Positions 37,852 through 63,625 are shown, counted from the stretch's first letter. The stretch: 64,000 nucleotides of DNA from IMGVR_UViG_3300029893_000001:310001-374000, one strand, 5' to 3'. Notes: generated by a model not told the origin, from the sequence alone. Translations and numbers: made by a program.

Positions 37852-38237
37852 TGTTCCACTCAGCCCTGCCGCCAGTGTCCTGCCAGCGCAATTGGGTCTC
37901 GAAATGGTCGTCTCCATCCCACCGAGGAGCAAATGCTGCAAACACACCTACCCGACGACCTGTTGTCTTCTGCACGTAAGGAAACAGCTCACCTCGACGG
38001 TAAGCCCAAACCCCTCCGTGAATACGCCTGAGGTGTTCGATGATTCGCCCGCCTAACCACCTACGTCTCGTCAGCACGGCGTCACCAAAAGACGAAGAAT
38101 TCGAGCCAGAAGAATGATAGCCCTACCGAGAAATTTCCTTTGTCAACCCGCACCCAATGCGACCTACGCTGAGTCCACCAACGCGGGCACCACTGAACTA
38201 CGAATTCACACCCAAGAAGAGCAAGTCGCATATCAAT

Positions 38238-39492: not shown

Positions 39493-40958
39493 CGCTGAAT
39501 CCTCTCTGCGAACAGAAACTTGAACCCCTCCATGGGGACGAGGTTGAACTCAGATCCACAATGGTCGCACTTCACGTTGACCGCCATGCCGCCGCGGGGC
39601 CCCACCATCAACTCTCCGGTCTCACAATCGGGACAGTGGCCCCTGCTCTTCTCAATGAAGTGCTTTTACCACTGTGTGAGCGTGCCTGATGTAGAACGCT
39701 TTTCTCTGGGGCTGTCGAGCCGACTAATAATGTAGAACGCTTCTTTTCCGGGGCTTTCGAGCCGAACAGAGAACGAAACCACGAAACTACGTGCATACTG
39801 CTTCTCCAGACAAGTTCAGTACCAGTACGAGAATTGAATGGCACGCTTAAAGACGTGCAGGGTGATCCGGTGCAGGGTGATCCGGAAGCACCGGTCACCC
39901 TGCCAATCCTCTGCGGGAGCTACTTGAAAGTAGAAAAGCCGATTACTCGACCAAGTACGGAACCCATTCTCTTGCCATGATTTCATGGCTGCCACTATCG
40001 GCAGGGTTCGTCACTCTAAAAGTCGACCTGGCTCTGCTTGAAGCTCCAAGTGAGCCAAGCGTGCATTTCATCATGGTCCCAGATCGTCTCGTCTCGGATG
40101 AAAGCCTGCCATTCTTCAGCCGTAGCCGGGCGTATAGCCCCCTTCAACTTCTCGTCGTAGTCGTCCCCCTCAAGGTTTCGAATCCATCCTCCACTGACAC
40201 TGCCACTCCAGACGTAAGTGCCGTCGAGGGGATGCTCTCCTACCATCTCTTCGGCTACATCTCTGGCAATCATGCCTTCGAGGTAATAGCTAATCGCTGT
40301 TCCCTGATAGTAGAGAATGTGCGGTACTCCGAACTGGACGATCACGAGCGCTTTGCTCGGAACAAACGGCTCCTTGTTCGTGTCTTCGTTCGTGGAAGGT
40401 GCGTTATCGAGGGAGGCGAGAAGAGTTGTCCTCTTCTCCTCACGGATTTCTTCTGCGGCCCGGTCCAAATCGAATTCAAATACACCACTCATGTTGTGCT
40501 CGACACTCCTTTCCGAACGAACAACCTCCCACGTACCCCCGTTCAAGGAGTCCTAGGGAAAGGAACTTGAAAACGGCCTCGGCCTGCGGTCTAGTACCCG
40601 CCGTGGAGGGAGCCGTCCATGATCAAGGCATTGAGTCTAAACGTCGTGCGAATCGAGCTGCAAGACCGAGAGGCAGACTCCGCAATCGTCTTTACAAAGG
40701 AAGGACCTGAGGCCACGTGGCGGATGATCGGGTATCAACAGTGGTCCGACCTATCTCGGAGACAACGCACCCTCATCATGACAGACATGATGACGAGCAG
40801 TGTCTTGGCCGTGATCGGCAAGTTCGTCGACACACGCCAAGAACGCCTCACTGTGGCTGAGACGTCACTCTCTGGCGTCGCGGAGCCAGTGACAAGTCCG
40901 CAGACGGTAGCAAGAAAATGAGGTACCACTGCGGCGGACGTCTACACTAGGAGATAAC

Positions 40959-41351
40959 TCACAGCACCTTCGAGTTGCCGACCGTCGAGTGGAAGCAGTC
41001 GGCGCCGTCAGGTGGACGGGTGAGTCGGTAGCTCGGAGGCAGCCCTAGCTCCAGTCGAATCTCCGTGAGGCGGTCCGAATAGCAGTTGAACCACCAGTAC
41101 ACATCATTGTGGTGGAGAAAAGTTTCGTAGGAAAACTCCACCATCGTACCCTGATATTTGCCCCATGCCTCTGTTTTAGGCTTTTCTCCGCGAACGACGG
41201 TGATGTGGGGCGGGTACTTTTGGGGTCGGCAGACATAATAGGGAGGCACCAAAGACCGCAGAAAACGGTGCAGCTCTGGGTCGACAAGAACCACCAAGCG
41301 GTAGTAGTCGTCTTTCACACAATAGTCGAGGGCCCCCAAACTAAGATGCAT
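40959..41351 (-). CDS. 2H phosphoesterase-like protein
   Basis: Two HxT motifs, PHITVV and FHSTVG, in 130 aa. Confidence 0.7.
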   Translation of the reverse strand: MHLSLGALDYCVKDDYYRLVVLVDPELHRFLRSLVPPYYVCRPQKYPPHITVVRGEKPKTEAWGKYQGTMVEFSYETFLHHNDVYWWFNCYSDRLTEIRLELGLPPSYRLTRPPDGADCFHSTVGNSKVL

Positions 41352-49728: not shown

Positions 49729-49905
49729 GCCCCAAAATCCATTTTGGATTTTGGGGCGTGAAAAACCCCCGGAGGGTTTTTCACTGGTTTTTGCAAAGCA
49801 AAAACCAACGCATTTTGCCGGGTAGGCAAAATGCGAGGCCCATTTTGCTCCGGGCAAAATGGGCGGGAGGCCGTTCGCTGGATTTTCCCCGGAGGAAAAT
49901 CCAGC
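49729..49905. repeat. array of six near-contiguous perfect inverted repeats
   Basis: Stems of 10-12 bp with 3-5 nt loops at 49729-49757, 49758-49784, 49785-49807, 49809-49835, 49838-49864 and 49877-49905. Confidence 0.92.
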
Positions 49906-49946
49906 CCTTAACGGCCGACTGGCCCGGGGCTTTTGCCCCGGGCCGG

Positions 49947-50204
49947 TCAGTGGCAGGACACCCAGAATCCGGGCCGGACCATGACGGCCCGATTGACCCG
50001 GCGGGTGACGTGCGCCCCGTACCGATTGCACGCGGCCTGCGTTTCGGCGAGGAGCGCATCCCCGCTCGACGCTTCCGAGCGGGGCGTCGAGGAATACTCG
50101 ACGCGGGCCGGCGTCGTCGCGCCGCAGCCCGAGGCGAGCAGCACGATGCAGACGAGCAGGAGCGAGAAGAGGCCAGCGCCGAGAGCCTTGATTTCGTCCA
50201 TCAT
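49947..50204 (-). CDS. small putative lipoprotein
   Basis: Hydrophobic signal ending LLASGC; promoter motif at 50228 and GGAGG. Confidence 0.65.
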   Translation of the reverse strand: MMDEIKALGAGLFSLLLVCIVLLASGCGATTPARVEYSSTPRSEASSGDALLAETQAACNRYGAHVTRRVNRAVMVRPGFWVSCH

Positions 50205-50309
50205 TATTCGGTCCTCCCTTGTGCCGACTAGTATCGGGTGGGTTCGCTCCTCTTAAATGGAGAAGCCCCCGGGCATCCGCCCGGGGGCTATTCCCTTGTT
50301 GCCCGGAAA

Positions 50310-50786
50310 TCAGCCGGGCAACAAATCGTTCAGCTCGTCGAGGAAATCGTCGACCTCCCCGTCCGAAGCCTCCGCGGGATCCGGGGTCGGCTCGGGAGCC
50401 GGAGCGGGGGCCGGCGCCGCCTTCGGAGTCGCCTTCGGTGCGGCCGGAGGCGCCACCGGAGCCGCTCCGCCGAGGCTCGACAGATCCAGATCGTCGATCC
50501 CCAGGGACAGCGCCGGAGCGCTGGCCGGCGGAGGGGTGGGCGCAGCCTTCGGAGCCTCGGGAGCCTTCGCGGCGCCCTTGCCCTTGCCCTTCGGACAGCC
50601 CCGGGCGTTGTGCCCCTGCTCGCCGCAGGTGCCGCAGGTGTAGGTCGGGGCCGGAGCCGCCATCACCGCCGCCGTGGCCAGCGTCGAGATGGGAACGACC
50701 GCGAAGCCCATCGCGCTCAGCGCCCGCACCACCTTGCCGAACTGCTCGTCGGTCATCTTGTCGGTCATCTTCTTGCTCATGATCAT
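50310..50786 (-). CDS. CCHC zinc-knuckle protein with Pro/Ala linker and acidic tail
   Basis: CGTCGEQGHNARGC; tail DGEVDDFLDELNDLLPG; promoter motif at 50823. Confidence 0.75.
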   Translation of the reverse strand: MIMSKKMTDKMTDEQFGKVVRALSAMGFAVVPISTLATAAVMAAPAPTYTCGTCGEQGHNARGCPKGKGKGAAKAPEAPKAAPTPPPASAPALSLGIDDLDLSSLGGAAPVAPPAAPKATPKAAPAPAPAPEPTPDPAEASDGEVDDFLDELNDLLPG

Positions 50787-50850
50787 GATTCCTTTCCGGC
50801 GAGGCGTCCCTCGCCTCATTTCCTAGTATCGAATGGGTTCGTTTGGCCGA

Positions 50851-50943
50851 CTAGCGCCGCTGACGCTCCGCGTGACGCCGCGCCAACTCGGCGCGGGCCT
50901 CCTCGATCGCTAGAATCTCGTCCACGTCCAAACCGTCGTACAT
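50851..50943 (-). CDS. 30-aa peptide MYDGLDVDEILAIEEARAELARRHAERQRR
   Basis: Promoter motif at 50968 and GGAGG upstream; below the ORF-track cutoff. Confidence 0.6.
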   Translation of the reverse strand: MYDGLDVDEILAIEEARAELARRHAERQRR

Positions 50944-51050
50944 GGGGCAAAAACCTCCGTTCGCCGTCTAATATCGGCCGGGTTCGCCCAATTGACATTT
51001 CGAGAGTAGCTTAAACGGGCTTTGGCCCGGGTTTCCCCGGGCCGCCCGCC

Positions 51051-51467
51051 TCACGCCGCCTTCGTACGGGCGGCCAGCTTGGCGGCGACCGCCTTGCTGT
51101 ACGCCGCCGCCTTCTCGTAGACCGCCGCCGCCAGGTGCAGATCGAGCCGGCCGATGCTCGACCCGAGGCACACGTGGCCCTCGGAGGGCACCCCGAGCAC
51201 CAGCTTGTTCCCCTGGCCGCAGATCCACCGCTGGAGACGCTGCCGGTTGCCGCTCGACGCCTTGGCCACGAAGACGTCGTGGACCGCGATGCGCGCCGGG
51301 CCCGGCGTCCCGTCCTCGCCGTGCATCGAGCGGAGCACGATGCCGAAGGACTTCACGCCCTCCCCGGCGGAGCCGACCTGCGCGCCGGTCGCGGCGTCCA
51401 GGTGGAAGACCAGGGCGGGGGCCAGCGGGAGATCGCGGGTGACGTCGTACGTGTTCTTCTTCGCCAT
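51051..51467 (-). CDS. hypothetical cassette protein
   Basis: Promoter motif at 51513, hairpin-TTTAA at 51011-51043. Confidence 0.7.
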   Translation of the reverse strand: MAKKNTYDVTRDLPLAPALVFHLDAATGAQVGSAGEGVKSFGIVLRSMHGEDGTPGPARIAVHDVFVAKASSGNRQRLQRWICGQGNKLVLGVPSEGHVCLGSSIGRLDLHLAAAVYEKAAAYSKAVAAKLAARTKAA

Positions 51468-51538
51468 GATTCACCATTCTTTCTGGGGCGCCGTGCCCCG
51501 TCGTTGTACCGACTAGTATTGTCAGGGTTCGGAAAACT

Positions 51539-51672
51539 TGGCGGAGTCACATCGATGCATGGGTGGAGCCCGTGTCTCTGTGCAAGTGACTCGCTCCCGA
51601 CGAGTATGTCCCTACGTGCAGCTTGCCGGTAACGTAGAGGGAGACCGCCGGGCGGCTATCATTCCTCCGCCA
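51539..51672 (-). ncRNA. candidate structured ncRNA (~135 nt)
   Basis: Directly downstream of the promoter motif at 51677; ends pair (TGGCGGAG/CTCCGCCA); nested stems; no credible ORF. Confidence 0.45.
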
Positions 51673-51743
51673 TTCACTACTATCAGCCGGGTTCAAATCC
51701 CTCTTAAACGCGAGAAGGCCCGGGGCTTTTGCCCCGGGCCCCA

Positions 51744-51941
51744 TCACCCGACCTTCCGAATCGGGGCGACGATGACTCGACTACGCAGCTCGCGCCGCTC
51801 TCGGAGCTTGCGGATCTGCAAATCGAGAAGCGCAATCGTGGCATCGAGCATTTCCCTTTCCTCGGGATCTTGCTCCCTCACACGCTTGCGCAGCGCCTCC
51901 GCTTTCTCACAGAGGAGTGCACGAATGACATGATCGTTCAT
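51744..51941 (-). CDS. hypothetical cassette protein
   Basis: Promoter motif at 51959, GGAGG, hairpin-TTTAA at 51704. Confidence 0.7.
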   Translation of the reverse strand: MNDHVIRALLCEKAEALRKRVREQDPEEREMLDATIALLDLQIRKLRERRELRSRVIVAPIRKVG

Positions 51942-52247
51942 TATTCACCTCCCACCAACTACTATCGAGCGGGTTCAATTGCTATTCGGGAGTAGGGTCA
52001 CGCGGAAATAGGAAAATGCCGACCAATTAATTTTGACCCATAAGTGGTAAAGTATGTAACCGCTCGTTCACACATTCTCACGCTTAAGTACGTATACGCT
52101 CGCAGCCATTGCGAGCTTGCTTGTACCCACTGCGAAATAGCCTAATAAGGCATGTACGCTCGCAGCCATTGCGAGCGGGGCGGGGCGTTAAAAGGCTACG
52201 GGCCCCAGAGGGGCCCTATCTCCTCGCAGCCGTTGCGAGAAATGGTC

Positions 52248-52478
52248 CTAGTAGTCCATCCGTCCGCTCGGAATGGGACCCGAGCCGAGCAGGTAGGCCA
52301 GCGCCTCGACCCACGCCGCTCGTCCAGCGGCCAAGTGAGACCTCAGGACGAAAATGCTTCCCAACGCTCCGACTTGCAGATCGAGAGCAAGTCGAGCCTG
52401 GTGCTCGTGGTAGCGTGCCGAGCCGACCGCTAGAGCAGCACGAGCACACTGATCACCGAAATCTTTCTCCGTGGCCAT
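52248..52478 (-). CDS. hypothetical cassette protein
   Basis: Promoter motif at 52496, GAGGAGG. Confidence 0.65.
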   Translation of the reverse strand: MATEKDFGDQCARAALAVGSARYHEHQARLALDLQVGALGSIFVLRSHLAAGRAAWVEALAYLLGSGPIPSGRMDY

Positions 52479-52569
52479 CGTTGCCTCCTCGCCGATTATT
52501 ATCAGCTGGGTTCAATTCGTGCGCGGTTAAATGCGTAACGGCTGCGAGGAATCTCGCAGCCGCTGCAAA

Positions 52570-52729
52570 CTCCCAAAGGGAAACTGGAATCCGTACTCAA
52601 TCACTTGTCCGACTTCGTTGTCGGGGTGTCTTTCGGGACCACACGATTCCCGCTTCTACGCCGAAGCTCCACGAAAGATCGTATGTTTCCAGCGTCCCTT
52701 TGGGAGCCCGATTTTTCGGTGAATCGGGC
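52570..52729 (-). ncRNA. candidate structured ncRNA (~160 nt)
   Basis: 12-bp plus 6-bp closing stem (52570-52589 / 52687-52706) with internal hairpins, preceded by hairpin 52706-52729. Confidence 0.5.
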
Positions 52730-52756
52730 GAACCGTTCTCGCAGCCGTTGCGAGAA

Positions 52757-53095
52757 TCAGGCGGCCGTGCCGAGCACCTTGCCCATCGACAGGAACCGGC
52801 CCTTCTCCCCGCGGAGCCTCAGGCGCAGATCCCCGCTCTCGTGGGCGTCCCGGATCTTGTCGCCGAGGCTCACCCGCACCCCCGCCTGCTTGCCCTGCTT
52901 CCTCAGGAACTCGCGGGCCTCCTCCGCCTCCTGCTGCTGCGCCTGCTGCCGCTCCTTGAACTGGCGGCGGGACTTGGCCTCGCGCTCCTTCGCCTTGCGC
53001 TCCTCGGAATCCTGCCAGAAGCGGCGCTTCACCTCCGCCGGGTCGAGGCGGCGGGTTCCGGGGACGAGCGTGGTGCGGGTCGCGTTCGTGGTCAT
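52757..53095 (-). CDS. hypothetical cassette protein (charged coiled coil)
   Basis: Promoter motif at 53131, AGGAGG. Confidence 0.7.
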   Translation of the reverse strand: MTTNATRTTLVPGTRRLDPAEVKRRFWQDSEERKAKEREAKSRRQFKERQQAQQQEAEEAREFLRKQGKQAGVRVSLGDKIRDAHESGDLRLRLRGEKGRFLSMGKVLGTAA

Positions 53096-53220
53096 GATTA
53101 TTCCTCCTGGGCCGGAGCCCGTTGCCCCGACTAGTATCGGCCGGGTTCGGCCGACTAGGGAATTAAACGCGCAACGGCTGCGAGATTTCTCGCAGCCGTT
53201 GCTTGTGTAGAGTCAGTGGG

Positions 53221-53403
53221 TCAGGGGATGCTGACCTTCGCCTCGACCGTCGCGGAGTCGAGATCGATGGCCTCGCGGCACGAATCCACGTCCACGATGT
53301 CATCGTTACCCACGAGCACATCCCACACGAGAGATTCCGCCTGCTGGGGACTCTCGGCCGTGACTTTCACCGTCACGGTCACAGTGAACTCCTGATCTTC
53401 CAT
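53221..53403 (-). CDS. small acidic cassette protein
   Basis: Promoter motif at 53423; cassette flanked by 19-bp direct repeats. Confidence 0.7.
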   Translation of the reverse strand: MEDQEFTVTVTVKVTAESPQQAESLVWDVLVGNDDIVDVDSCREAIDLDSATVEAKVSIP

Positions 53404-53451
53404 TTTGCATTTCCCTCGCTAACTATTATCCGCAGGGTTGCTTGTGTAGAG

Positions 53452-53730
53452 TCAGCCCAGGTCGAAGGGGTACTCCGAAGTGACGTCGCCCCACAGACGA
53501 TCGTCGTCGCCGTAGTAGTGGTGCGTGGCCGTCTCCGGGATCACCGGATTCTCCCGGTCGTCGTTCCTGTAGACACAGAAGCGCTCCCCCGGGCAGCAGT
53601 CGCCCAGGAAAAGCATTCCCGCTCCCATCAGGACGATCGTCTCGGCCGGCGTTCCCTGCGGGGCCACGAAATGCACCACGGTGACGTCGCGGTCGCTTTC
53701 GTAGCGCACGGAGTAGTCGTTGACGTTCAT
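53452..53730 (-). CDS. hypothetical cassette protein
   Basis: Promoter motif at 53751, GAGGAGG. Confidence 0.7.
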   Translation of the reverse strand: MNVNDYSVRYESDRDVTVVHFVAPQGTPAETIVLMGAGMLFLGDCCPGERFCVYRNDDRENPVIPETATHHYYGDDDRLWGDVTSEYPFDLG

Positions 53731-53850
53731 TCGGCTTTCCTCCTCAGCGACTATTATCGTCGGGGTTCACGTCCGACACGAAAAGCGCGTTAAATGAAAC
53801 AACGGCTGCGAGAAATCTCGCAGCCGTTGCGTGCCTTGGGAACTTTGGAA

Positions 53851-54195
53851 CTACAGGACCACCCATCCCCAGAAGACGGCCCAGGCGATGAAGCGGATCG
53901 GCCAGCGGGTCCAGGAGTCATTCTGCCAGAGGCAGAGCAAAATCCAAGTGACCCCGAACGCCGGCCAGAGCGTATTGAACCACGGGATCACCTGGACGAT
54001 TCCGCACCAGATCCAGTACGTCAGCAGGAAGCACGTGGAAATGTTGCAGAAGAACTCCACCCAATCCGAGATTTCCATCTCGTTGTGCGGGGTGTAGATC
54101 GTCCGGCCCGTCTCGTGGTCCCTGTAGACCTTGTACGTGGCGCGGAGCGGGCGGATGCTCGGCTGGAGCCGGCGGATATTCTTCGGGTTGGGCAT
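53851..54195 (-). CDS. Trp-rich membrane protein
   Basis: Promoter motif at 54214; three hydrophobic segments. Confidence 0.7.
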   Translation of the reverse strand: MPNPKNIRRLQPSIRPLRATYKVYRDHETGRTIYTPHNEMEISDWVEFFCNISTCFLLTYWIWCGIVQVIPWFNTLWPAFGVTWILLCLWQNDSWTRWPIRFIAWAVFWGWVVL

Positions 54196-54290
54196 GGGTC
54201 GTCTCCTCGCTGACTATTATCAACAGGGTTCTCGCAGCCGTTGCGAGAAATTAAAGTAAGATGGCCCCGGGTTTCCCCGAGGCCCTCTTT

Positions 54291-54677
54291 TCATCCGAGC
54301 GGCTGACTGAGAGCCACCGCACGGCGTCGAGCGTGGATCGGATTGCTCTTCCAGAAGCGAGCCCAGAAATCGCGCTCCGCTTGCTTCGCCTCGTGCTCAT
54401 TCCTGTACTGCAATTGAACGAGCAGATCGGCGTATTCCCCATCCCACTTGGGGTCGTACTCCAGCGACTCACGAACGAGCTGGAATCCCTCCGTTTCGAC
54501 GACCGCCTCGGCCCGGAGCGCCCGGAGTCGGTACGGGACGAATCGGAGGAGCGCCTCCCGATAGTCAGCGTCGTTTGTGATGAATCGGCTCGCCTGTCGG
54601 AGCCAGTCGGCAGCCGACTGTTGCTCTTTCATGACTCGCCGATACAGCACCTCGGAGAACGGGATGATTTCTGCCAT
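54291..54677 (-). CDS. hypothetical cassette protein
   Basis: Promoter motif at 54696, GGGAGG. Confidence 0.7.
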   Translation of the reverse strand: MAEIIPFSEVLYRRVMKEQQSAADWLRQASRFITNDADYREALLRFVPYRLRALRAEAVVETEGFQLVRESLEYDPKWDGEYADLLVQLQYRNEHEAKQAERDFWARFWKSNPIHARRRAVALSQPLG

Positions 54678-54759
54678 TCAACCTCCCTTCGCCGATTATT
54701 ATCAGCAGGGTTCTGTGCGGCCGTGAATGTCCTTAAAGCACGAAAAGGCCCTTGCTAGG

Positions 54760-54915
54760 GCCCTTTCGCGGGTCATTTCGGCAAAAGCTGACCAGGCTCG
54801 GAATACCAAGGCACGTGGTCGTGTACCTTGGTTAGCCTTGCCCCTTTTCGAGTCCATTATTGGTGGCTCGCCTTACGGGTGGGAGGGTGCAGCCCGGATG
54901 GAAACGGAACGAGAA
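54760..54915 (-). ncRNA. candidate ncRNA cassette (~160 nt)
   Basis: Between the promoter motif at 54922 and hairpin-TTTAA at 54733; no SD-led ORF; 10-bp stem ACCAAGGTAC/GTGCCTTGGT and others. Confidence 0.45.
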
Positions 54916-54958
54916 CACCATTTAGTATCGCCAGGGTTCTCGCAGCGGCTGCGAATCC

Positions 54959-55159
54959 CTAAATCCCGATCCAGTAGTTGTCCAGGTCGCTCAGCTTCAC
55001 GCTGGTGATCTCGGGATTGTGGTCCGGCAGACGTTGCTTGGCGAGTCGACGGACGTGAACATCGAACTCCTTTTTGTCCCTCGTTCGCGTCAGGACCGTG
55101 AATCTGTCCACCGCCGACTTCCCGTCGACTTCGTAGCACAGTTCGATGAGATACTTCAT
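54959..55159 (-). CDS. hypothetical cassette protein
   Basis: Promoter motif at 55178, GAGGAGG. Confidence 0.7.
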   Translation of the reverse strand: MKYLIELCYEVDGKSAVDRFTVLTRTRDKKEFDVHVRRLAKQRLPDHNPEITSVKLSDLDNYWIGI

Positions 55160-55247
55160 TTTCCGCCTCCTCGCCGAATATTATTGGCAGGGTTCTCGCA
55201 GTGACGGCGAGAATTTAAATTGAGAAAGGCCCCTCGCGGGGCCCGTC

Positions 55248-55466
55248 TCAGTCGTCGCGGAGGCACGGGGTCGGTCCCCCGCAGAATCCGCAGCGCCCCG
55301 GATTGTGGTACGCTGAGAGCACGTGATTGTTGGCCACGTGCTCCGGCTCGAAATAGTCTTCGGTTTCCCGAACTTCCATTCCTTCCGGGGCTTGCTCGTC
55401 GTCGAGGAGACGCACGGCTCGTGCCGTGGTCTTGCCGGGGTTGGCAATGTAGTAGCGGATGGTCAT
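55248..55466 (-). CDS. hypothetical protein, probably leaderless
   Basis: ATG lies 7 nt after GATAAT of the promoter motif at 55472; no SD. Confidence 0.6.
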   Translation of the reverse strand: MTIRYYIANPGKTTARAVRLLDDEQAPEGMEVRETEDYFEPEHVANNHVLSAYHNPGRCGFCGGPTPCLRDD

Positions 55467-55491
55467 GCCGAATATTATCGGCAGGGTTGAA

Positions 55492-55564
55492 TCGGACCGG
55501 TGGGATTCGAACCCACAACGTCCCGGTTATGAGCCGGGGGCTCTAACCATTGAGCTACGGTCCG
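55492..55564 (-). tRNA. tRNA with CAT anticodon (Ile2 or elongator Met; not initiator)
   Basis: CGGACCG TAGCTCAATGGTTAGAGC C CCCGG CTCATAA CCGGG ACGTT GTGGG TTCGAAT CCCAC CGGTCCG A; paired 1-72; no encoded CCA. Confidence 0.93.
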
Positions 55565-55921
55565 ATGGTTTTCACTAGGTTACGTTTCGCGTTACTTTGT
55601 GCGAACGATTCAGGCCCAGATCCCAGGCGCCGAATCCGGTTGCTCCGGGATCGGGATGTATTGGTTTCCCACGAATCCCGCCGCCGCGTCCAAGGCGACC
55701 ACACGGGGGAATGTCACCGCAGGGTGCGGCTCATCCTCCCAATAGGCTTCCCACGCAGCCAGAGCGAGATACTGCAAGAGCAGTTTTTCCATTATTCACC
55801 TCCTCGCCGTATCCATACGGGCTTGCACCACTTTTCTCAATGACACGAGGCCTTGGGTCGCTGTCTTCCCACAAACGTATGGGTGCAACCCATACGTTTT
55901 CGCCTTTGGTGTACACGAGAA

Positions 55922-56380
55922 TCAACCTTGGACAAATTGATCGGGTGTTCCGCAGTTCCACACCCTCAAGGGTGTGCCCCAACGGGTCGGCTCCTCGGTC
56001 CAGTCGAAGTGGATCCGGCGGGAGTTCCCCTTCCGAATCCAGAACTTCCCCCTCGCATCCTGAGGCCGACTCCACACGTCGGCCGAGACGTTCATCGAGT
56101 CCAGGAGATCGTTGACGATTCCGTGGAAATCCACCCAATCCTGCCACTCCAGAAAGCGAGCCTTCGGCTTCTTGCGGGGCGGGAAAGTGACGACGCACTC
56201 TCCGGGGTGATTCCCGCAGTATTCCTTCGCGGTCACGAGGCGGACGCGCTTCAGAAGGATCGTCTGGCCATCGACGCACGATTCCACGTTGAAGCGACCG
56301 TCGGCCCGCACCTTCTTTTGAAGGGCTACGTGGATTCGCTCGACGTCGCTGCCGTCGAGCACCTTGATTGAGTACGGCAT
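55922..56380 (-). CDS. hypothetical cassette protein
   Basis: Promoter motif at 56413, GGAGG. Confidence 0.72.
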   Translation of the reverse strand: MPYSIKVLDGSDVERIHVALQKKVRADGRFNVESCVDGQTILLKRVRLVTAKEYCGNHPGECVVTFPPRKKPKARFLEWQDWVDFHGIVNDLLDSMNVSADVWSRPQDARGKFWIRKGNSRRIHFDWTEEPTRWGTPLRVWNCGTPDQFVQG

Positions 56381-56491
56381 GATTATTCCTCCGTGGGTTG
56401 GTCCAGCGAGCTTTAGTATCGGGAGGGTTCTCGCCGTGGCTGCGAGAATTAAACTGGAAACGGGCCCCGGGAAAACCCCGGAGCCCGTTTT

Positions 56492-56854
56492 CTAGAACTC
56501 GCCCTCGTCGTCGTCCACCGCGTCGAGTGCGTCTGGACGTCCGAGGCCGCCGTCGGGCCCATGAGGGTGGTACCTCTTTTCCTTGTGGATGTCCAGAAAG
56601 AAGAGCGCCTCTTGCAGCGAACGCACCCTCTTTGGATTCTTCGTCCGCACCATTTTTGGGTTCGTCAGGGAATCCTTCGAGACCCACTCCTCGACGAGAA
56701 AGAAAACCTCCGGGCACCCATCGAGAGGAGCCGAGGGCCCGGTAATATTCTCGATGACGGTCGAGATTCGGCCTCGCTCGTCCGAGAAAATCACCGTGGT
56801 CGGCTCGAAATCGGTGAGCTTTTCGATGATTTCACTGTAGGTGAACTTTCGCAT
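56492..56854 (-). CDS. hypothetical protein
   Basis: AAGGGA SD, followed by hairpin-TTTAA at 56449. Confidence 0.65.
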   Translation of the reverse strand: MRKFTYSEIIEKLTDFEPTTVIFSDERGRISTVIENITGPSAPLDGCPEVFFLVEEWVSKDSLTNPKMVRTKNPKRVRSLQEALFFLDIHKEKRYHPHGPDGGLGRPDALDAVDDDEGEF

Positions 56855-57030
56855 TTGTTCCCTTCTACCGACGGTATCGGTACTCCTCGTCCACCTCTTG
56901 CTGCGTGGGCTCCCTTCCGAGCCTCTTGCGCAGATCGTCGCGGGCCGCGTTCCACTTGCGCTCGTCCTCCGCCCTTTCGAGAGCGCAGGCCGAGCATCCC
57001 ATCATCATGCACATGGTCGCCTCCCTCTGA

Positions 57031-57245
57031 GAGCGAGGCTCGGAGCCGGAATCCGAGATTAGTCTGTTTTCGCCTCTTGGCCTAGCTCCGCCTCCGTGCC
57101 TAAACCTACACGGCCAGCCTCTACACTAGGTTGCAGACGAATCCAGGGTCTAGCCGCTTTTGCCTTGGATGACTAGTCCTCGGCGCTTGCACCCACGGGG
57201 GCGTCACCCCTTGGGGTATCTGGATTCCGGCTCCGAGCCTCGCTC
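57031..57245 (-). ncRNA. candidate structured ncRNA (~215 nt) with 24-bp closing stem
   Basis: Perfect inverted repeat 57031-57054 / 57222-57245 just downstream of the promoter motif at 57260; internal hairpins; no ORF. Confidence 0.7.
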
Positions 57246-57351
57246 CTCGCCGTCGTGGTCTACTATCAGGAGGGTTCAACTCCTCTAATTAAACAGAGAA
57301 AGGGGCCTGTGGCCCTTCTCCCTGTTTTGGAATCTCGCAGTGGCGGCGAGT

Positions 57352-57990
57352 CTAGTAGGCCCGGCTCACCACCGGAAGCCCACGCAGTTCCTCGACTATT
57401 CCCTTGAAGGCGACCTCGACCTCGCCGGTGTCGGGCAGCTCGACCGTGCGATCGATTCCGTAGAGATCCTCCAGGAACTCCCGGAATCCAGGCGTGTCGC
57501 CGCGGAACGGCTTGTTGAGAAGCCACTCCGCGAACTCTTCTCGGCGATTCCAATCCAGATCCTTGGCGACCTGCGTACCGATTGCCACCCCGAGGATACA
57601 ATATCCTCGGACATCCCAACGATCGATGAACGACCTCGCGCTGCTGTCGCTCGAAAAGACTCGACACGAGTAGTGCACGTGCCAGTAGCCCCACTTCGCC
57701 GCCGGCTCGCTCTCCCTCACGTCGTCCATGGAGGCGTAGGAACCCATTTCCGGGCCCCACCCATCCGACGACGGCATCGCCCTGACGAACGTATGGGCAC
57801 TGTCGTAGCGATTTCGGATGAAGCTGCCGTCCGGCATCTTGAAGGCGTTGATCTGGTGGCAGTGCGGGTGCTTGAGATCCTCCTCCAGCGACTGCTTTGC
57901 GCTCTCGACGCTGCGCTCGCAAAAGAACCTCCACGAGAGCACCGCGCTGATGAGCCGCTGCCAGACCTTGTGAGAAATCTTGTTGTTCAT
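57352..57990 (-). CDS. hypothetical cassette protein
   Basis: GAGGAGG SD; partial promoter motif at 58013. Confidence 0.7.
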   Translation of the reverse strand: MNNKISHKVWQRLISAVLSWRFFCERSVESAKQSLEEDLKHPHCHQINAFKMPDGSFIRNRYDSAHTFVRAMPSSDGWGPEMGSYASMDDVRESEPAAKWGYWHVHYSCRVFSSDSSARSFIDRWDVRGYCILGVAIGTQVAKDLDWNRREEFAEWLLNKPFRGDTPGFREFLEDLYGIDRTVELPDTGEVEVAFKGIVEELRGLPVVSRAY

Positions 57991-58279
57991 TGTTCTGCCC
58001 TCCTCGCTCTAACTATTATCGTCGTCGACTACGATCCGATGCTCCCCATTCGCGGCGCATGCTGAATCACGTAGGAGACGCCGGTCAAAACCCAGCCAGC
58101 GGGAGTGTGGCCGTAGATGTTCACGCAGAACGTGAACACCAACACGGCGACGATGACGTACCACCTCTTGAGGGTTTCCACGATTGATTGACCTCCTCTC
58201 GCCGAACTATTATCGACGGGGTTCGCCGTCATATCGAGAACGACGAAATGCCCTCCGGGACTTACCGGAGGGCATTTCG

Positions 58280-58555
58280 TCAGGATTCCACGATCTTGCC
58301 GGCGTCGAGATCCACGAAACCGATGTGGACGTACTTCCAGCCCGTGCTTCCAATGAGCGTGGGCGAATCCGGGAGACGCTCCGGAGCCTCGGCGAACGTG
58401 CAGCCCTCTCCGACGAGCAGGAACGCCAAGTGGCCGAATCCAGAGGAATCCACCGCCGCGTTTTGGTAGGCTGCCCAGCGAGTTCGCTCGCGCTGTCGAG
58501 CGCGCATTTGGCTCAGGACTTCCTCGTCGATTTGGAGATCATTGGTCGTCATCAT
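58280..58555 (-). CDS. hypothetical protein
   Basis: Coupled downstream of the 58561-58932 gene. Confidence 0.65.
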   Translation of the reverse strand: MMTTNDLQIDEEVLSQMRARQRERTRWAAYQNAAVDSSGFGHLAFLLVGEGCTFAEAPERLPDSPTLIGSTGWKYVHIGFVDLDAGKIVES

Positions 58556-58560
58556 GTCCC

Positions 58561-58932
58561 TCAGTACAGGTTCACGTAGACGCTATCGCCCACGATTTCC
58601 ATCGCGTCCCGGACCTTTTGGGCCGCGTTCATTTCCTCGACTTCGCAGCGATCCCACGTCGCTCTCTGGTCGAGCACGTCGCGGAGAGCAGCCGGCGTGA
58701 CGAGCACCACTTCGGTGTCGCCCCAGGTGAACGCGTTGGTGATGAGTTCCGAGACGATCTCGTATTCCTCTTCGGAGAGGAACTCCGAGAGCGTGATGAA
58801 CTGGCACTCGAAAAGCGTCGGTCGCTTCATGGCCTCCTTTCGGTCGCAGTCTTCGCAGTTGCCTGGACCGCGAAACTCGAAGACAGTCGGACTGATTTCC
58901 TGGCCACACGTCTTGCAATGATATTCGGCCAT
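58561..58932 (-). CDS. hypothetical zinc-finger-containing protein
   Basis: Start MAEYHCKTCG after GAGGAG; promoter motif at 58950. Confidence 0.68.
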   Translation of the reverse strand: MAEYHCKTCGQEISPTVFEFRGPGNCEDCDRKEAMKRPTLFECQFITLSEFLSEEEYEIVSELITNAFTWGDTEVVLVTPAALRDVLDQRATWDRCEVEEMNAAQKVRDAMEIVGDSVYVNLY

Positions 58933-59020
58933 GTTTTTCTCCTCGCCTATTATTATCGACGGGGTTCGTGGTAACGACAAACGCAGAATAGGCCCCGAGT
59001 TTCCCCGGAGCCTATCTCTC

Positions 59021-59395
59021 TCACTTGTTCCTGAAGTACGTCTCGTACCCGATGTCCTTGGTGGACATCAGATTGTGCTTGAGATTCATGGACTCGCCGC
59101 TGAGCATGCGGCGCATTTCCTTCTCGCTGACGAAATCCACCCACTTCTCGTCGTGTTCGGGCCGAATCATGTGGTAGTTCTCGGGGTGAGAGCCCGTCGA
59201 ATCGTAGTCGGTCCACTTCATGATCTGTTGCGTGGTCCATCCGACCGCCGGCATTCCGGTCATGTCGTAGCACCCGCGATTGACCAATTCGGTGGCCACC
59301 ACTTCGTGCCCTTCGATGACCAGCTTGACGATCGGCCAGTCCTCGGGATCGAGAACGTTGTCGCTGAGTCGGGCGTAGAGAATCGGCTTTCGCAT
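59021..59395 (-). CDS. hypothetical protein
   Basis: GAGGAGG immediately after hairpin-TTTAA at 59408. Confidence 0.7.
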   Translation of the reverse strand: MRKPILYARLSDNVLDPEDWPIVKLVIEGHEVVATELVNRGCYDMTGMPAVGWTTQQIMKWTDYDSTGSHPENYHMIRPEHDEKWVDFVSEKEMRRMLSGESMNLKHNLMSTKDIGYETYFRNK

Positions 59396-59440
59396 CTTAC
59401 CTCCTCGTTAAACGCGAAAAGGCCCCTTTCGGGGCCTCTG

Positions 59441-59833
59441 CTATTCCTCGGGAGCAAGTAGCAGCATGGTTTCGGCGGCGTGAGTCAGCGCACCCCACTG
59501 GAGTGCTTCCTCCTCGCACACCGCCTTGTACGCGCGTTGAAGTACACGCAGAAGCACACGCTGCTCGAATTGAATCCGAGCCTCGCCGATCATTTCGTCG
59601 AGGGGCGGGCCCTCGTCGTTGTAGTAGGCGATGCACGCCGGCTTCATCTGCGGGAACGTCTCGCAGTACAGCCAGTCGAGCACGCTCTTGTATTCGTCTT
59701 CCCTCGGAGGGGCGATCTTTCGCAGCGCCTTGGCGTGTTTGCTCGTGCGGAGCCACGCCTCGACCTCCGGGAAGAGGCTCGACGTGAGAGGCCCTCGAAC
59801 GACGCAAACGCACACCATCTGGAGAGCACTCAT
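59441..59833 (-). CDS. hypothetical protein
   Basis: GAGGAGG SD just downstream of tRNA-Glu. Confidence 0.68.
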   Translation of the reverse strand: MSALQMVCVCVVRGPLTSSLFPEVEAWLRTSKHAKALRKIAPPREDEYKSVLDWLYCETFPQMKPACIAYYNDEGPPLDEMIGEARIQFEQRVLLRVLQRAYKAVCEEEALQWGALTHAAETMLLLAPEE

Positions 59834-59859
59834 TATTCACCTCCTCGCCATTATTGAAT

Positions 59860-59932
59860 TGACCCCAACGGGATTTGAACCCGTGTTCTCGCCGTGAAAG
59901 GGCGGCGTCCTAGGCCACTAGACGATGGGGCC
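59860..59932 (-). tRNA. tRNA-Glu(TTC)
   Basis: GGCCCCA TCGTCTAGTGGCCTAGGAC G CCGCC CTTTCAC GGCGA GAAC ACGGG TTCAAAT CCCGT TGGGGTC A; promoter motif at 59946; no encoded CCA. Confidence 0.95.
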
Positions 59933-60210
59933 GTGTCCTCGCCGATTACTATCGGCGGGGTTCACTTCTTTCCGTGGGTGGACTCCCACCATTTCAGATA
60001 CTCGTAATCCTTTCGGTCGAGCATCCGATAATAGGACTCGGGGTCCGCGTCGAGTTGGTATTCATTCTCAGCGGCGTTTTGGTCGACGCCAGGAAATGTC
60101 TCCTCGTACCTGACTCGTCGATTTTTCTTACGCTGTTTCTGCTGTCGTCGCCGTCGCATGGGATATTATTCCTCGGGTTAACGCCGAATAGGCCCCGAAA
60201 GGCCATCGGC

Positions 60211-60408
60211 AGAAGCGAATCGCAGTGGGGAGGCCTACAGAGGCGGATAAAGGCAAACCAATACCCGGAACCCTCGGTTCCGACGGGATTCGAACCCGCA
60301 TCACCGCCGCACCTGGTGCCACAGGACGCCCACTAGACAGCTCCGCGTTGGCACTCACGGAACGTTCATCGTAGGTCCCTGTAAGCCGCCCCACTGCGAT
60401 TCGCTTCT
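60211..60408 (-). ncRNA. candidate ncRNA (198 nt) with permuted tRNA-like (YrlA-type) module and kissing loops
   Basis: 20-bp perfect inverted repeat 60211-60230 / 60389-60408 extended by 11 bp; T arm GCGGG-TTCGAAT-CCCGT, loop-closed acceptor CGGAACC-GAG-GGTTCCG, D-like arm; followed by hairpin-TTAA at 60178. Confidence 0.72.
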
Positions 60409-60419
60409 TGGTTATTGTT

Positions 60420-61170
60420 TCCGCAGATTCAGTTTCCTCCGCCCTGCGCTGCGGCTCAATCTGAGTGACCATGAGAAGGGAGTGCAGTATTCGTTAGCCT
60501 CGTTGGAGATAGTGTGCCCTTTGACTGCCGAGGGTGCAATAGCAATCTGCACCTAAACATAGGCCCGGCAATCTACAGACGATAGTCCAGCGAAGCACCG
60601 AACAATGCGTGTAACCTACGCGATGGTCAAACAATCGAGATGAGTACGAAAGGGAGTTAATTGGCGAGTCAAGGCGTCCTCCTAACGAGACTCTTTTGGG
60701 CCAGCTTTCGCTTTTAAGTGGCGTGGAGGTACGACACAATCTGCAACGTCCAGTAGCAGAAGCCCTGCCCTTGTACTCAGAACATTATCCAGCATATGCT
60801 GGAAGCGAATGGCTATGTTCCTTCGCCACCCGTTCCCCTTGAGCCGCCTTTAGCGGACGCTCATTGGTCCTATCGGAAGCCTAGGCACATCTTGCCCAAG
60901 ATTCCAATAGTATCAATTCAATCTCCGAGCGGTCCAGCCAGGGGGACCGATCCCTGCCACGAACTTAGCGGCGGCGCGTCATTCGTGGCTATATAGTCTC
61001 GAAGTGGTTACGACTCTTGCCCGACAAGTGTCGCAGCAATCAACTGGTCCAGGGGAAGGATTCAGTTGAGTAGGTATGCTTAGTTGCTTCTTGGCGGGTT
61101 TCCTACTAAACCCAGCCAGTCATAAGCTGTAGAACAGGAGAATCATTTCCAGTCCTCCGGCTGTGGGATT
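60420..61170 (-). ncRNA. candidate large structured ncRNA (~750 nt)
   Basis: No credible ORF in an otherwise gene-dense region; dense hairpins and long-range stems; strand inferred from neighbours. Confidence 0.5.
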
Positions 61171-61205
61171 CATTAAACGCGAAGAGGGGCCCGAAGGCCC
61201 CTCTT

Positions 61206-61760
61206 CTATGCGTCCACCATCGCCCGACGGCTCCAGTAGAGGATTGCCTTGGCGAAATCCTCCGCCGAATAGGTGGCCGGCGTTCCTCCGGGGAGACCCA
61301 GGAAGTTGCGGGCCATCGCCATCGGAGTCTGGGGCTCCGGCTCCTCGGTGGGGCGGGCGTTGATCGAGACGATCTCCCACTCGCATTCCGTCGAGGCGTC
61401 GTTGCCGAGAACGTCGTGCCTGTAGAGCACGATCTCGACGACCTTCGCGGGAGCCTTCTCGCCCTTCGCACGCACCTCGATGTAGGGCTCCTCGCCCTCT
61501 CGCCGCGCCGAGAACGTCGCCCGGAGCGTCGTCTTCGGAGTGACCTCGATGACGCCACACTTGAAGTAGTGCGCCTGACTCTCGGTCATCGGGATGAGCA
61601 GAACGCCGTCGCGGTAGCCCGGCTTCGCCTCGGAGAACTGCTGCTCGACGAAAGCGATGAGCACATCCCACTTCGCATCGTGGGTGGCGATGAAGTGTGA
61701 GAAGGGGCTCTCCGGCGTCTGGCGACGCACGAAGTCATTGATTCCGATGAGGTTACCCAT
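61206..61760 (-). CDS. DUF3228-like protein
   Basis: INDFVRRQ, PGYRDGV, FSARREGEEP, IVLY, WEIVSIN, PMAMARNFLGLPGG; promoter motif at 61792. Confidence 0.72.
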   Translation of the reverse strand: MGNLIGINDFVRRQTPESPFSHFIATHDAKWDVLIAFVEQQFSEAKPGYRDGVLLIPMTESQAHYFKCGVIEVTPKTTLRATFSARREGEEPYIEVRAKGEKAPAKVVEIVLYRHDVLGNDASTECEWEIVSINARPTEEPEPQTPMAMARNFLGLPGGTPATYSAEDFAKAILYWSRRAMVDA

Positions 61761-61807
61761 GATTGATTCGGCCTCCCTTTGCCTCGCCAAACTACTATCG
61801 ATTGGGT

Positions 61808-62020
61808 TCAGTCCCTCTCGATCGCGGAGAAGTCTCCCAGGTTCCACGTGGTGTGAGTGGGCTGCATGATGCCGAGAACCTGAGTTCCGTAGTTCTTCTC
61901 GTAATCCCAGGTGTTGAAGTCGCCCCGCGACTGAGCGTAGGCAGCGATGACAGCCTCTCGTGGAGAGCACGAAAACGTCTGCTCGTGGCAGGTGGCGAGG
62001 TTGAGGACAGTGGTGAACAT
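61808..62020 (-). CDS. hypothetical protein
   Basis: Start MFTTVL after GAGGAGG following hairpin-TTTAA at 62040. Confidence 0.65.
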   Translation of the reverse strand: MFTTVLNLATCHEQTFSCSPREAVIAAYAQSRGDFNTWDYEKNYGTQVLGIMQPTHTTWNLGDFSAIERD

Positions 62021-62072
62021 GATTGATTTCCTCCTCTCATTAAACGCGAGAAGGGGCCCGAAGGCCCCGTTC

Positions 62073-62490
62073 TTAGTGACTCCAGGAGCGACGCACACCC
62101 TTCGAGAGGCGGCGAATCATTCGCTCCTCCTGAGCGATGACCTTCCTGGCGACCGGATTGAAATCGCGCAGGTCATCGCGCGTTGGGTAGATCCGGTCGA
62201 TGTCCAGTCCGAATCCCCTACCGCTGTGATGGCTGAAGAGACTTACATGACCAGGAAAAGCCATCGTCTCGATGTAGTGTCCAATCACGACTGTCGAGAT
62301 CGTGACGTGCCGGGTCTTGCACCACGTGCGGTACTCCGGACGAAAGAGATCCCAGGACTTCGGGATGCGCCGTCCGTACCACCGGATGATCGGCTGCTTG
62401 AAGACGACCTTCGTGACCCTCTGGACCTGACCGTCCTTGTGGGTGATGATCTCGGTGGAGCGCCGGAGAGCGCCGGAGAATGTTGCTCAT
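62073..62490 (-). pseudogene. cassette gene frameshifted by a 10-bp tandem duplication
   Basis: GCGCCGGAGA x2 at 62460-62479; removing one unit gives a single 135-aa ORF joining ATG 62490 to the 62073-62288 frame. Confidence 0.75.
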
Positions 62491-62608
62491 GATTGATTGC
62501 CTCCTCTGATTGATTGCCTCCTCGCTCAACTATTATCGGCGGGGTTCAGCGTTCTCTTAAACGCGAGAAGGGGCCCGAAGGCCCCTCGTACGCAGCTCAC
62601 TTAGTGAG

Positions 62609-63232
62609 CTAGTTGGTCTCCGAAGGAGGCGGCAGGACAGCCGATGGCCTTCGGGGAGACGCCCACTTTTCCGCGGCCTGTTCGATGTTGCCATCCGTCA
62701 GGGTGCCGACTTCCATCCTGATGAAGTGCATCGCCTCATTTCGGTAACGATCTGCTTCGAGCGAATCGCAGAAGACCTCGACGAGATTCTTCGCGTCGGC
62801 CAGACCGAGGCCGTGCATCTCGCGGGCCTTCTTGATGGCGGGGATCTTCCTGCCAGTGTTGTTCGGACCTCCGACCACCGCCATGAACTTCGCGGCGGGA
62901 TCGAGATCCTTGACGGGGAAGGGGCACTGCTTTCCGATGTTGCCTCGGATGCGATCGTTGTCGTACTTGAGGCGACCGTTCTCCTGTCGGAGCGTCGCGA
63001 TCTCTTCGCGCTGAAGAGCCACGGTCTTGTTCATGTGAGACCACTCACAGACCATCGCCGACGCATCGGCGTGGATCGACTCCAAGAGCGACGAGGCGCC
63101 GAGCACCATCGCATAGATGGGCACCAACACCAGGTTGAAGGGCTCGTCCTCGACCTGTTCCTTGAGACGGTCCGCGGCGTCTCGGACCATCGTCGTCAGG
63201 ATCTCCAGGTTCTTCACGAACGTGTCGTACAT
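62609..63232 (-). CDS. protein with ribosomal L7/L12 C-terminal-like domain
   Basis: RKIPAIKKAREMHGLGLADAKNLVE; GGAGG; promoter motif at 63263. Confidence 0.72.
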   Translation of the reverse strand: MYDTFVKNLEILTTMVRDAADRLKEQVEDEPFNLVLVPIYAMVLGASSLLESIHADASAMVCEWSHMNKTVALQREEIATLRQENGRLKYDNDRIRGNIGKQCPFPVKDLDPAAKFMAVVGGPNNTGRKIPAIKKAREMHGLGLADAKNLVEVFCDSLEADRYRNEAMHFIRMEVGTLTDGNIEQAAEKWASPRRPSAVLPPPSETN

Positions 63233-63625
63233 TACCAATTCCTCCGGGCCAGAAGTTGGCACTTAGTATCGCCAGGGTCCAACCCCTTAAGCAAGAAAAG
63301 GGCGGCCCCGAAGGACCGCCAATTCATCGGTACATGTTGGCTTCCTGATGGGAAGCCCAATCGTCGTTGACGATCTCGGCGAGTTTGCGAGCAACCTGCT
63401 CACCGTACTTCGAGATCCACTCTTGGAGTTGTTCCCCCGAGAGCGGCTTGATCTCGTATCCGACCATCGGGTCGGAAGCCGGAAGAGCAGGGAAAACCTG
63501 CGGCGGGTCCGAGAAGGCAAACTTGGTGGGTTGCATCGTCTCGACGACGGTGGCGATCACGAGATATTCCACTCCATCCAGAGTGAACTCGTGCTCCCTT
63601 TCGGGATAGGTGAAGCTCTTGTGAT

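Follow-up and report, generated by a model that had tools for sequence, protein, structure and literature searches.

Three stem-closed elements, one of them made of parts of tRNA-Asp, stand out within an array of promoter cassettes in an uncultured jumbo phage and are candidate RNA modules. The window we analyzed is the 64,000-nucleotide stretch comprising bases 310001–374000 of IMGVR_UViG_3300029893_000001, a viral contig of 392 kb. An earlier note on this DNA, drawn from its sequence alone, had described six segments as a battery of structured non-coding RNAs: segment 1 (51539–51672), segment 2 (52570–52729), segment 3 (54760–54915), segment 4 (57031–57245), segment 5 (60211–60408), and segment 6 (60420–61170). 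Folding of the minus strand against dinucleotide shuffles gave z-scores of −1.8, −4.75, −1.4, −7.9, −9.95, and −2.6 for segments 1–6. Only segments 2 (its 52570–52706 part), 4, and 5 are statistically unusual as wholes, and almost all of their signal comes from terminal inverted repeats of 18–31 bp. The anatomy and statistics of these elements, and the tRNA derivation and strand asymmetry of segment 5, are direct observations. We tentatively favor, at rather less than an even chance, the reading that segments 2, 4, and 5 are co-transcribed RNA modules whose RNase III-length stems serve processing or end protection, and that segment 5 is a tRNA-Asp-derived mimic resembling YrlA. The observation made in the earlier note was confirmed in part, and its interpretation is supported in part.

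Segment 5 is the sole segment with positive evidence of RNA-level identity and is the best candidate. It is enclosed by a perfect outer stem of 20 bp, a bulged C, and an inner stem of 11 bp that includes G–U pairs, with pair probabilities of at least 0.72 in the outer stem and 0.82–1.0 in the inner one. The predicted folding energy is −118.7 kcal/mol for the minus strand vs. −95.8 kcal/mol for the plus strand, a gap of 23 kcal/mol. This minus-strand advantage and the G–U pairs of the inner stem indicate selection at the RNA level. The interior consists, in order, of two hairpins, a T-arm, a closed acceptor-like hairpin, and a hairpin carrying UUGGUU. Four of the five T-arm stem pairs have probabilities of 0.79–0.98 (0.18 for the terminal G–U pair), and six of the seven acceptor-like pairs reach 0.97–0.99 (0.18 for the outermost). 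The T-arm and the next 8 nt are identical to the 3′ end of bacterial tRNA-Asp(GTC), and an exact stretch of at least 22 nt, from the T-arm through the acceptor 3′ strand, recurs in 11 Anoxybacillus/Bhargavaea genomes, being the 3′ end of tRNA-Asp(GTC) in the one that was checked. Because the second strand of the acceptor-like hairpin also matches the 5′ acceptor strand of that checked tRNA-Asp, segment 5 is made of tRNA-Asp parts, in which one tRNA's end runs directly into the beginning of the following one. A rival cloverleaf pairing with an upstream GUUCCG is about 12 kcal/mol costlier than the YrlA-like fold. The hairpin in the D-arm position aligns only loosely with the tRNA, with a pair probability of 0.06 for the D-stem register.

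The terminal repeats set segments 2, 4, and 5 apart from the rest of the window. Outside the CAACGGCTGCGAGA hairpin family, these three contain the only inverted repeats of at least 20 nt with arms 97–167 nt apart in the 64 kb. Exact long-range inverted repeats of at least 12 nt number six in the window, where shuffles give 1.1; segments 2, 4, and 5 account for three, the repeated hairpin family for two, and the sixth is near 27.6 kb. All three positions are ORF-free (ORF, open reading frame). Segment 2 lies in the 3′ untranslated region (UTR) of a 112-aa gene, ahead of a palindromic hairpin of 14 bp at 52537–52566. Segment 4 occupies the 5′ leader of a 49-aa gene, between the promoter at 57261–57276 and the Shine–Dalgarno sequence (SD) and ATG (57014). 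Its 24-bp helix ends 6 nt ahead of that SD, and without the 215-nt element the leader resembles an ordinary leader of the array (GGCGAG...GGGAGG). Segment 5 is intergenic. No second copy of any of the three occurs in the 392-kb contig or in IMG/VR.

The setting is an array of small promoter units. The window contains 31 copies of the motif AACCC-N4-RATANTA vs. 0.58 expected, always on the minus strand, which also carries nearly all genes of the window, and 24 of them fall within 50.2–63.3 kb (24 in 14 kb). Alignment of the units yields the consensus hairpin, GCGTTTAA, ~20 nt, (T)GAACCC-N4-GATAATA, GGCGAGGAGG, ATG; because the aligned units share this hairpin/promoter/leader layout, the cassette picture is real. 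The array extends at least 7.7 kb past the window end, and its small proteins are orphans without a Pfam or PHROGs family. RNA genes do occur inside it, with tRNA-Glu directly behind a promoter and tRNA-Met directly before one.

Much of what the earlier note described in this region stands. Its cassette array is there, as are all four of the end pairings it listed (8 bp, 12+6 bp, 24 bp, and 20+11 bp), and three segments (starting at 51672, 54915, and 57245) do follow a promoter motif, at 5–15 nt. None of the six contains a credible ORF, as it had stated: segment 6 has all three stop types in all six frames, segment 2 has no ATG at all, and ORF pieces from the segments matched nothing in Pfam or PHROGs. 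No paralogy was found among the six, in keeping with its remark that they share no obvious sequence, and segments 2, 4, and 5 have no common sequence. Coordinates of the features are collected in Table 1.

Table 1 Features of the promoter-cassette region, in window coordinates
Feature	Coordinates	Strand	Remarks
Promoter-unit array	50229..63279	−	24 units; AACCC-N4-GATANTA each, leader GGCGAGGAGG usually
Segment 1	51539..51672	−	134 nt between two promoters; z −1.8, 9/200 shuffles as stable
Segment 2 core element	52570..52706	−	137 nt; 12+6 bp stem (I7); z −4.75 and −5.3
Segment 3	54742..54915	−	promoter-to-terminator unit without ORF or usual GGCGAGGAGG leader; z −1.4
tRNA-Met(CAT)	55491..55565	−	3′ end of 60-aa gene unit, abuts next promoter
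Segment 4	57031..57245	−	215 nt; perfect 24-bp inverted repeat (I4); z −7.86
tRNA-Glu(TTC)	59860..59932	−	between promoter/leader and second leader copy + SD of 130-aa gene
Segment 5	60211..60408	−	198-nt stem-closed tRNA-derived RNA candidate; inverted repeat I3; z −9.95
Segment 5, hairpin in D-arm position	60245..60266	−	contains UUGGUU; loose alignment to 5′ part of tRNA-Asp
Segment 5, acceptor-like hairpin	60266..60282	−	CGGAACC, loop GAG, GGUUCCG; designed 7 bp
Segment 5, T-arm	60283..60299	−	stem GCGGG/CCCGU, canonical loop UUCGAAU; aligned by Rfam tRNA and YrlA models
Segment 6, 3′ part	60420..60799	−	380 nt, ORF-free; z −0.81, no excess structure
Segment 6, 5′ part	60800..61170	−	371 nt, ORF-free; z −4.82, 0/100 shuffles as stable

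The remaining segments differ in kind. Windows of 150 nt across 36–64 kb have a mean z of −1.0 (sd 1.6), with 11% at or below −3, mostly terminator hairpins; segments 1 and 3 lie within this local baseline and so cannot be told from background. In segment 1, an ATG with a frame of 16 codons behind it stands just 1 nt away from an SD-like GGAGG, and the segment continues into the next promoter; a decayed or truncated leader of a cassette is its probable identity. The sole gene-caller ORF on the segments, a 65-aa frame over segment 1, extends across both a terminator and a promoter and has no real homologue, its apparent matches being repeat proteins with summed scores (23 bits per stretch). Segment 3 has its promoter at 54923–54938 and a terminator-like hairpin at its end, and solely by the logic of the units it may be a small RNA gene.

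Segment 6 (751 nt, 52.6% G+C) has a flat codon-position G+C of 0.52–0.54 vs. a third-position value of ~0.8 in neighboring genes. In sliding windows the minus strand of its 5′ part is more stable than the plus strand, and this part may be a further structured RNA. Because no promoter motif was found between the terminator of the upstream DUF3228 gene and segment 5, transcription of segment 6 would need read-through or an unrecognized promoter. The unstructured 3′ part carries four copies of YAGATTG (mostly TGCAGATTG) in a span of 290 nt, at 60457–60743, compared with 12 on both strands of the whole 64 kb. A replication origin was considered for this segment and rejected, as there is no GC-skew turn or AT-rich unwinding stretch and the flanking genes are all on one strand.

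In the mechanism we propose, the elements at 52570–52706, 57031–57245, and 60211–60408 would be co-transcribed with the small genes around them. Their Watson–Crick terminal helices of 18–31 bp belong to the length class of RNase III substrates and may be processing and end-protection signals, acting perhaps as the stems flanking rRNA and the sites in T7 early mRNA do. About 20 bp of uninterrupted double-stranded RNA (dsRNA), the length taken for RNase III, is present in segment 4 (24 bp) and segment 5 (20 bp), with segment 2 (12+6 bp) borderline. Cleavage by RNase III would either release the enclosed RNA or cut the UTR of the neighboring mRNA. In segment 5, the T-arm/acceptor minihelix inside a long stem would reproduce the layout of YrlA/Y RNAs and of a fused tRNA dimer, and such a mimic could engage RNase P, TruB, the CCA-adding enzyme, or RNA-repair factors. 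That tRNA genes fill equivalent UTR slots in the same array is counted in favor of RNA modules. A more ambitious version, which we consider distinctly unlikely, is that the phage encodes a set of undescribed RNase III-released RNAs, comprising a Ro-independent, tRNA-Asp-derived Y-like mimic with a tRNA dimer as its origin and a ~370-nt structured RNA, which would act on host tRNA-directed enzymes or defenses.

A number of results weigh against the RNA-module reading. When refolded without their terminal stems, the cores of segments 2, 4, and 5 have z-scores of −0.03, −0.33, and −1.77, so close to shuffled sequence that they fold like any sequence of 55–61% G+C. The outer stems of the three contain no G–U pair in ~62 bp; selection for perfect dsRNA would leave such a composition, and so would a DNA-level inverted duplication of recent date or a terminal inverted repeat. 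Strand asymmetry is small in segment 4, in segment 2 the plus strand has a slight advantage in folding, and no promoter motif precedes segments 5 and 6. Neither an RNase III gene nor a Ro gene turned up in the 72 kb examined. The match of segment 5 to the Rfam YrlA model (RF02553) is local and scores 16.3 bits vs. a threshold of 69. Nor is segment 5 a true tRNA: the Rfam tRNA model (RF00005) gives 19.2 bits vs. 29, ARAGORN makes no call at default settings, and the cloverleaf is the costlier fold by 12 kcal/mol. At relaxed thresholds ARAGORN does call it, together with 12 more extra calls (13 in all), most inside coding ORFs.

Neither the comparative searches nor the expression data lend the RNA-module reading support. 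No relatives were found in the searched collections, and hence there is no covariation for the segments. GenBank phages gave no DNA match. Searches of IMG/VR with the two flanking proteins, the promoter/hairpin and promoter/leader patterns, and both stem arms returned only this contig and chance 16-mer matches, and those of JGI metagenomes gave 0 matches for a segment 6 22-mer and three chance matches for the promoter pattern. The 212-aa neighbor protein is an orphan, and the DUF3228 neighbor belongs to a widespread cellular family in unrelated context. Three other assemblies of the phage are 99.97–100% identical over segments 1–4 and for that reason yield no covariation; DNA runs contained the identical strain, plus one 235-nt landfill contig with four differences. 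A 403-kb contig (L015; JGI 3300029892) joins 61659 to 58377 and is without 58378–61658, which holds segments 5 and 6, tRNA-Glu, and four genes, and two further contigs (NCBI, Logan) break exactly at 58377. This hints at either strain-level presence/absence or an assembly artefact or chimera. In the metatranscriptome of the same study (run X11), mapping to 55300–61250 (segments 4–6) returned only tRNAs of other organisms and no phage reads. With Rfam covariance models at gathering thresholds, only tRNA-Met and tRNA-Glu pass in the whole window; nothing credible appeared for any segment at E up to 5–10, segments 3 and 4 and the 60800–61170 part had no Rfam match, and neither did the sequence beyond the window end.

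These results also bear on the claims of the earlier note that did not hold. It had described extensively base-paired, multi-hairpin cores, which the refolding contradicts, and of its shared closed-stem design the terminal repeat survives in three segments, the cores being no better than shuffles. Its count of six structured RNAs shrinks to the three stem-closed elements and the 371-nt stretch of segment 6, as segments 1 and 3 are background and 60420–60799 shows no excess. The RNA-level product it envisaged is indicated at 60211–60408 alone, which is tRNA-derived and folds much better on the transcribed strand. Of the checks that it had proposed, the Rfam scan brought no segment to a family threshold, the collection of homologues from GenBank, IMG/VR, and JGI returned only this phage, and the metatranscriptome left segments 4–6 uncovered.

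The most serious alternative, which we regard as somewhat unlikely, is that the segments are neutral debris at the DNA level, with no RNA function. The stems would be inverted-duplication or recombination scars from cassette shuffling, segment 5 a decaying remnant of tandem tRNA-Asp genes, and segments 1, 3, and 6 decayed cassettes or spacers. Perfect Watson–Crick outer stems around random-like cores would be expected of such scars, as would the single-copy state of every element, the degenerate cloverleaf of segment 5 (19.2 bits, and an ARAGORN call only among 13 false ones at relaxed settings), the phage assembly without 58378–61658, and the crippled SD–ATG retained in segment 1. Set against this are the strong strand asymmetry of segment 5, the G–U pairs in its inner stem, and its T-loop and acceptor hairpin, which are still intact. 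In addition, all three stem-closed elements avoid coding sequence and occupy UTR positions that would be transcribed, and the 5′ part of segment 6 has excess structure (z −4.8). Alternatively, the stems could be cis-regulatory UTR elements that govern translation or stability of the adjacent mRNA and yield no free RNA product. The placement relative to SD/ATG and stop, with a 24-bp helix 6 nt before an SD and a 12+6 helix in a 3′ UTR, would suit such a role, and other long structured leaders follow the same promoter (e.g., 39800–39990, z −4.8). We nonetheless think it unlikely, given that segments 5 and 6 lie outside the UTR of any obvious gene, that the next gene has its own promoter-like motif with the ATG 4 nt after it, and that no riboswitch or leader family matches.

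The proposal of the earlier note itself now appears improbable, namely that six stable RNAs, expressed early, serve as effectors or decoys directed at host nucleases, sensors, RNA polymerase, or ribosomes. A tRNA-Asp-like minihelix could in principle decoy tRNA-targeting enzymes, and the array resembles the early-gene regions of large phages. However, no more than three or four of the six segments stand out, the sole shared design beyond chance is the terminal repeat, and expression, conservation, or a partner gene lend no support. Still less probable, to the point of being remote, is the insertion into UTRs of elements akin to miniature inverted-repeat transposable elements (MITEs) such as Correia or ERIC. 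Terminal inverted repeats of 18–31 bp around 100–170 bp in UTRs have that appearance, and segment 4 looks inserted into a normal leader. The MITE reading is weak because each element occurs once in the 392-kb contig and nowhere else in IMG/VR, the three share no sequence, and there are no target-site duplications.

Further identities were considered and rejected. A transfer-messenger RNA in segments 5/6 was called only by ARAGORN at an 80% threshold, with an atypical tag and no Rfam tmRNA match at E up to 10. For an attP-type tRNA 3′ fragment, no integrase domain occurs among the called genes around segment 5, and the tRNA-Asp identity ends at the T-arm; integron attC-like sites likewise lack an integrase and R′/R″ cores. 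The 65-aa protein encoded right after segment 5 (59962–60159, minus strand) starts MRRRRQQKQRKKNRRVRY, an arginine-rich motif of the type known from RNA-binding antiterminators, with no family match. Its gene has no SD, and its ATG stands 4 nt past a promoter-like motif. On the other side, upstream of segment 6, the DUF3228 protein (61206–61760) has its closest relatives (64–65% identity) on cellular-looking metagenome contigs, where HicAB and PIN toxin–antitoxin genes flank the gene. More distant members of the family carry the labels of candidate-phyla-radiation bacteria (Uhrbacteria, Falkowbacteria).

The phage sequence is present in runs labelled subsurface metagenome. The window encodes a DnaB-type helicase, a second helicase, a sliding-clamp-like protein, and an exonuclease, and the closest GenBank phages are Lu11-type jumbo phages, with only ~30% identity in the helicase. 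From ~50 kb on, G+C climbs from 52% to 58–66%. The array shows further features at the DNA level. The leader GGCGAGGA stands on both sides of tRNA-Glu (59840–59962), and the unit at 62546 carries a tandem duplication of gaggaggcaatcaatca (62480–62546); both are signs of recombination at conserved leaders. In many promoters between 50229 and 63279 the −10-like GATAATA lies within a short palindrome, e.g., GCCGAT-AGTA-ATCGGC, with the N4 of the motif complementary to the leader start, which could point to a promoter of hairpin type or to operator binding by a dimeric factor. A family of small hairpins, CTCGCAACGGCTGCGAG, is repeated across 52099–57350, often abutting a promoter, and has a 14-bp palindromic form, CAACGGCTGCGAGA...TCTCGCAGCCGTTG, used like a terminator; the family has 17 matches vs. 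0.04 expected.

Three other places were noted. At 49740–49950 (minus strand), directly after the last high-GC cassette gene and at the boundary to the 52% G+C part, seven perfect hairpins follow one another with stems of 9–11 bp, six of them around AAAAT/ATTTT, and the 150-nt fold z is about −8; they could act together as a multi-terminator at the end of the array or form a DNA-level site. The ORF-free leader at 39800–39990 (minus strand, ~190 nt), behind a promoter motif at 39993–40008, contains a strong hairpin and then two copies of the direct repeat ACCGGATCACCCTGC. An ORF-free gap of lower G+C at 51990–52245, absent from the list of the earlier note, has two 22-nt direct repeats (GCTCGCAATGGCTGCGAGCGTA) 60 nt apart. 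Elsewhere in the window, an RNA-repair island is suggested by three proteins taken together (34484–35029, 40959–41351, and 37267–37947): one with a HAD_SAK_2 domain (70 bits), of the RNA-repair “Swiss Army Knife” type, and two with weak matches, to a 2H-SAK phosphoesterase and a nucleotidyltransferase, respectively; the HAD_SAK_2 protein shows only that the phage invests in RNA repair. A protein kinase with an N-terminal DnaJ fusion (29222–30250) and an ADP-ribosylglycohydrolase (18899–19798) are also encoded.

If segment 5 is expressed, it would represent a phage tRNA mimic close to its tRNA-dimer origin, the route proposed for Y RNAs, and with no Ro partner nearby the binding partners of tRNA-like Y RNAs could be tested in a new setting. 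If the stem-closed inserts are true RNA modules, promoter cassettes of giant phages would exchange RNAs besides small proteins and tRNAs. If they are scars, the region records inverted duplications and tRNA decay in a fast-shuffling early region.

Among known systems, the species 1 and 2 RNAs of T4 and the tRNA region of T5 provide RNAs of unknown function among phage tRNA genes, with which they are co-transcribed and co-processed; in contrast, the present segments are interspersed with protein cassettes, and the stems that close them are much longer. RNase III acts on helices in T7 early mRNA and on the stems flanking 16S and 23S rRNA, where the arms lie far apart and enclose the product. Helices of ~20 bp or longer between or around functional units, with enclosing arms as in rRNA operons, are what we find here, although the T7 sites are simple hairpins with internal loops whereas segments 2, 4, and 5 enclose 100–170 nt. 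Transcribed MITEs such as the Neisseria Correia/NEMIS and enterobacterial ERIC elements are 100–200 bp long, have terminal inverted repeats, and form long hairpins in mRNA from UTR positions. Segments 2, 4, and 5 share the terminal inverted repeats; unlike those multi-copy families with target duplications, they are three unrelated elements. Segment 6 recalls GOLLD and ROOL (Rfam RF01998 and RF03087) as a large phage ORF-free region of 0.4–0.75 kb beside tRNA-like sequence, but a 1-kb search gave no Rfam match at E up to 10 and excess structure is confined to its 5′ half.

The closest comparison is between segment 5 and YrlA. The YrlA layout runs stem, variable region, T, closed acceptor, D position, stem; in Mycobacterium smegmatis YrlA, a 7-bp acceptor stem makes the RNA a substrate of RNase P, and an origin of the family from a dimeric tRNA has been proposed (Chen et al. 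2014, PMC4201824; Wang et al. 2018, 10.1101/312249). GNCGAAN0-1G near the YrlA 5′ end is the presumed Ro60 contact motif (PMC4201824). Like YrlA, segment 5 has its ends paired in a long stem (20 + 11 bp) and a T stem-loop with a tRNA T-loop, directly followed by a closed acceptor-like stem-loop, and the Rfam YrlA alignment covers exactly this T-arm and acceptor hairpin (model positions 31–62). The 7-bp acceptor design is that of the M. smegmatis RNA. Segment 5 lies near tRNA genes, and it fits the proposed origin from a tRNA dimer. Unlike YrlA, segment 5 has no GNCGAAN0-1G (the nearest sequence is AGCGAAUC at nt 4–11), GG and not the conserved UA as the linker after the acceptor stem, no recognizable D stem-loop with two G, ~77 nt of additional hairpins ahead of the T-arm, and no adjacent Ro60/TROVE (rsr) gene. 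No TROVE protein was found among the genes called between 13 kb downstream and 7 kb upstream, or among window ORFs of at least 400 aa. Segment 5 resembles a permuted-tRNA mimic, but membership in the YrlA family fails on the motif, the linker, the D-arm, and Ro adjacency. The new part, defensible as a lead from a single sequence, is the combination of a Y-like tRNA mimic with RNase III-type enclosing stems in a phage cassette array.

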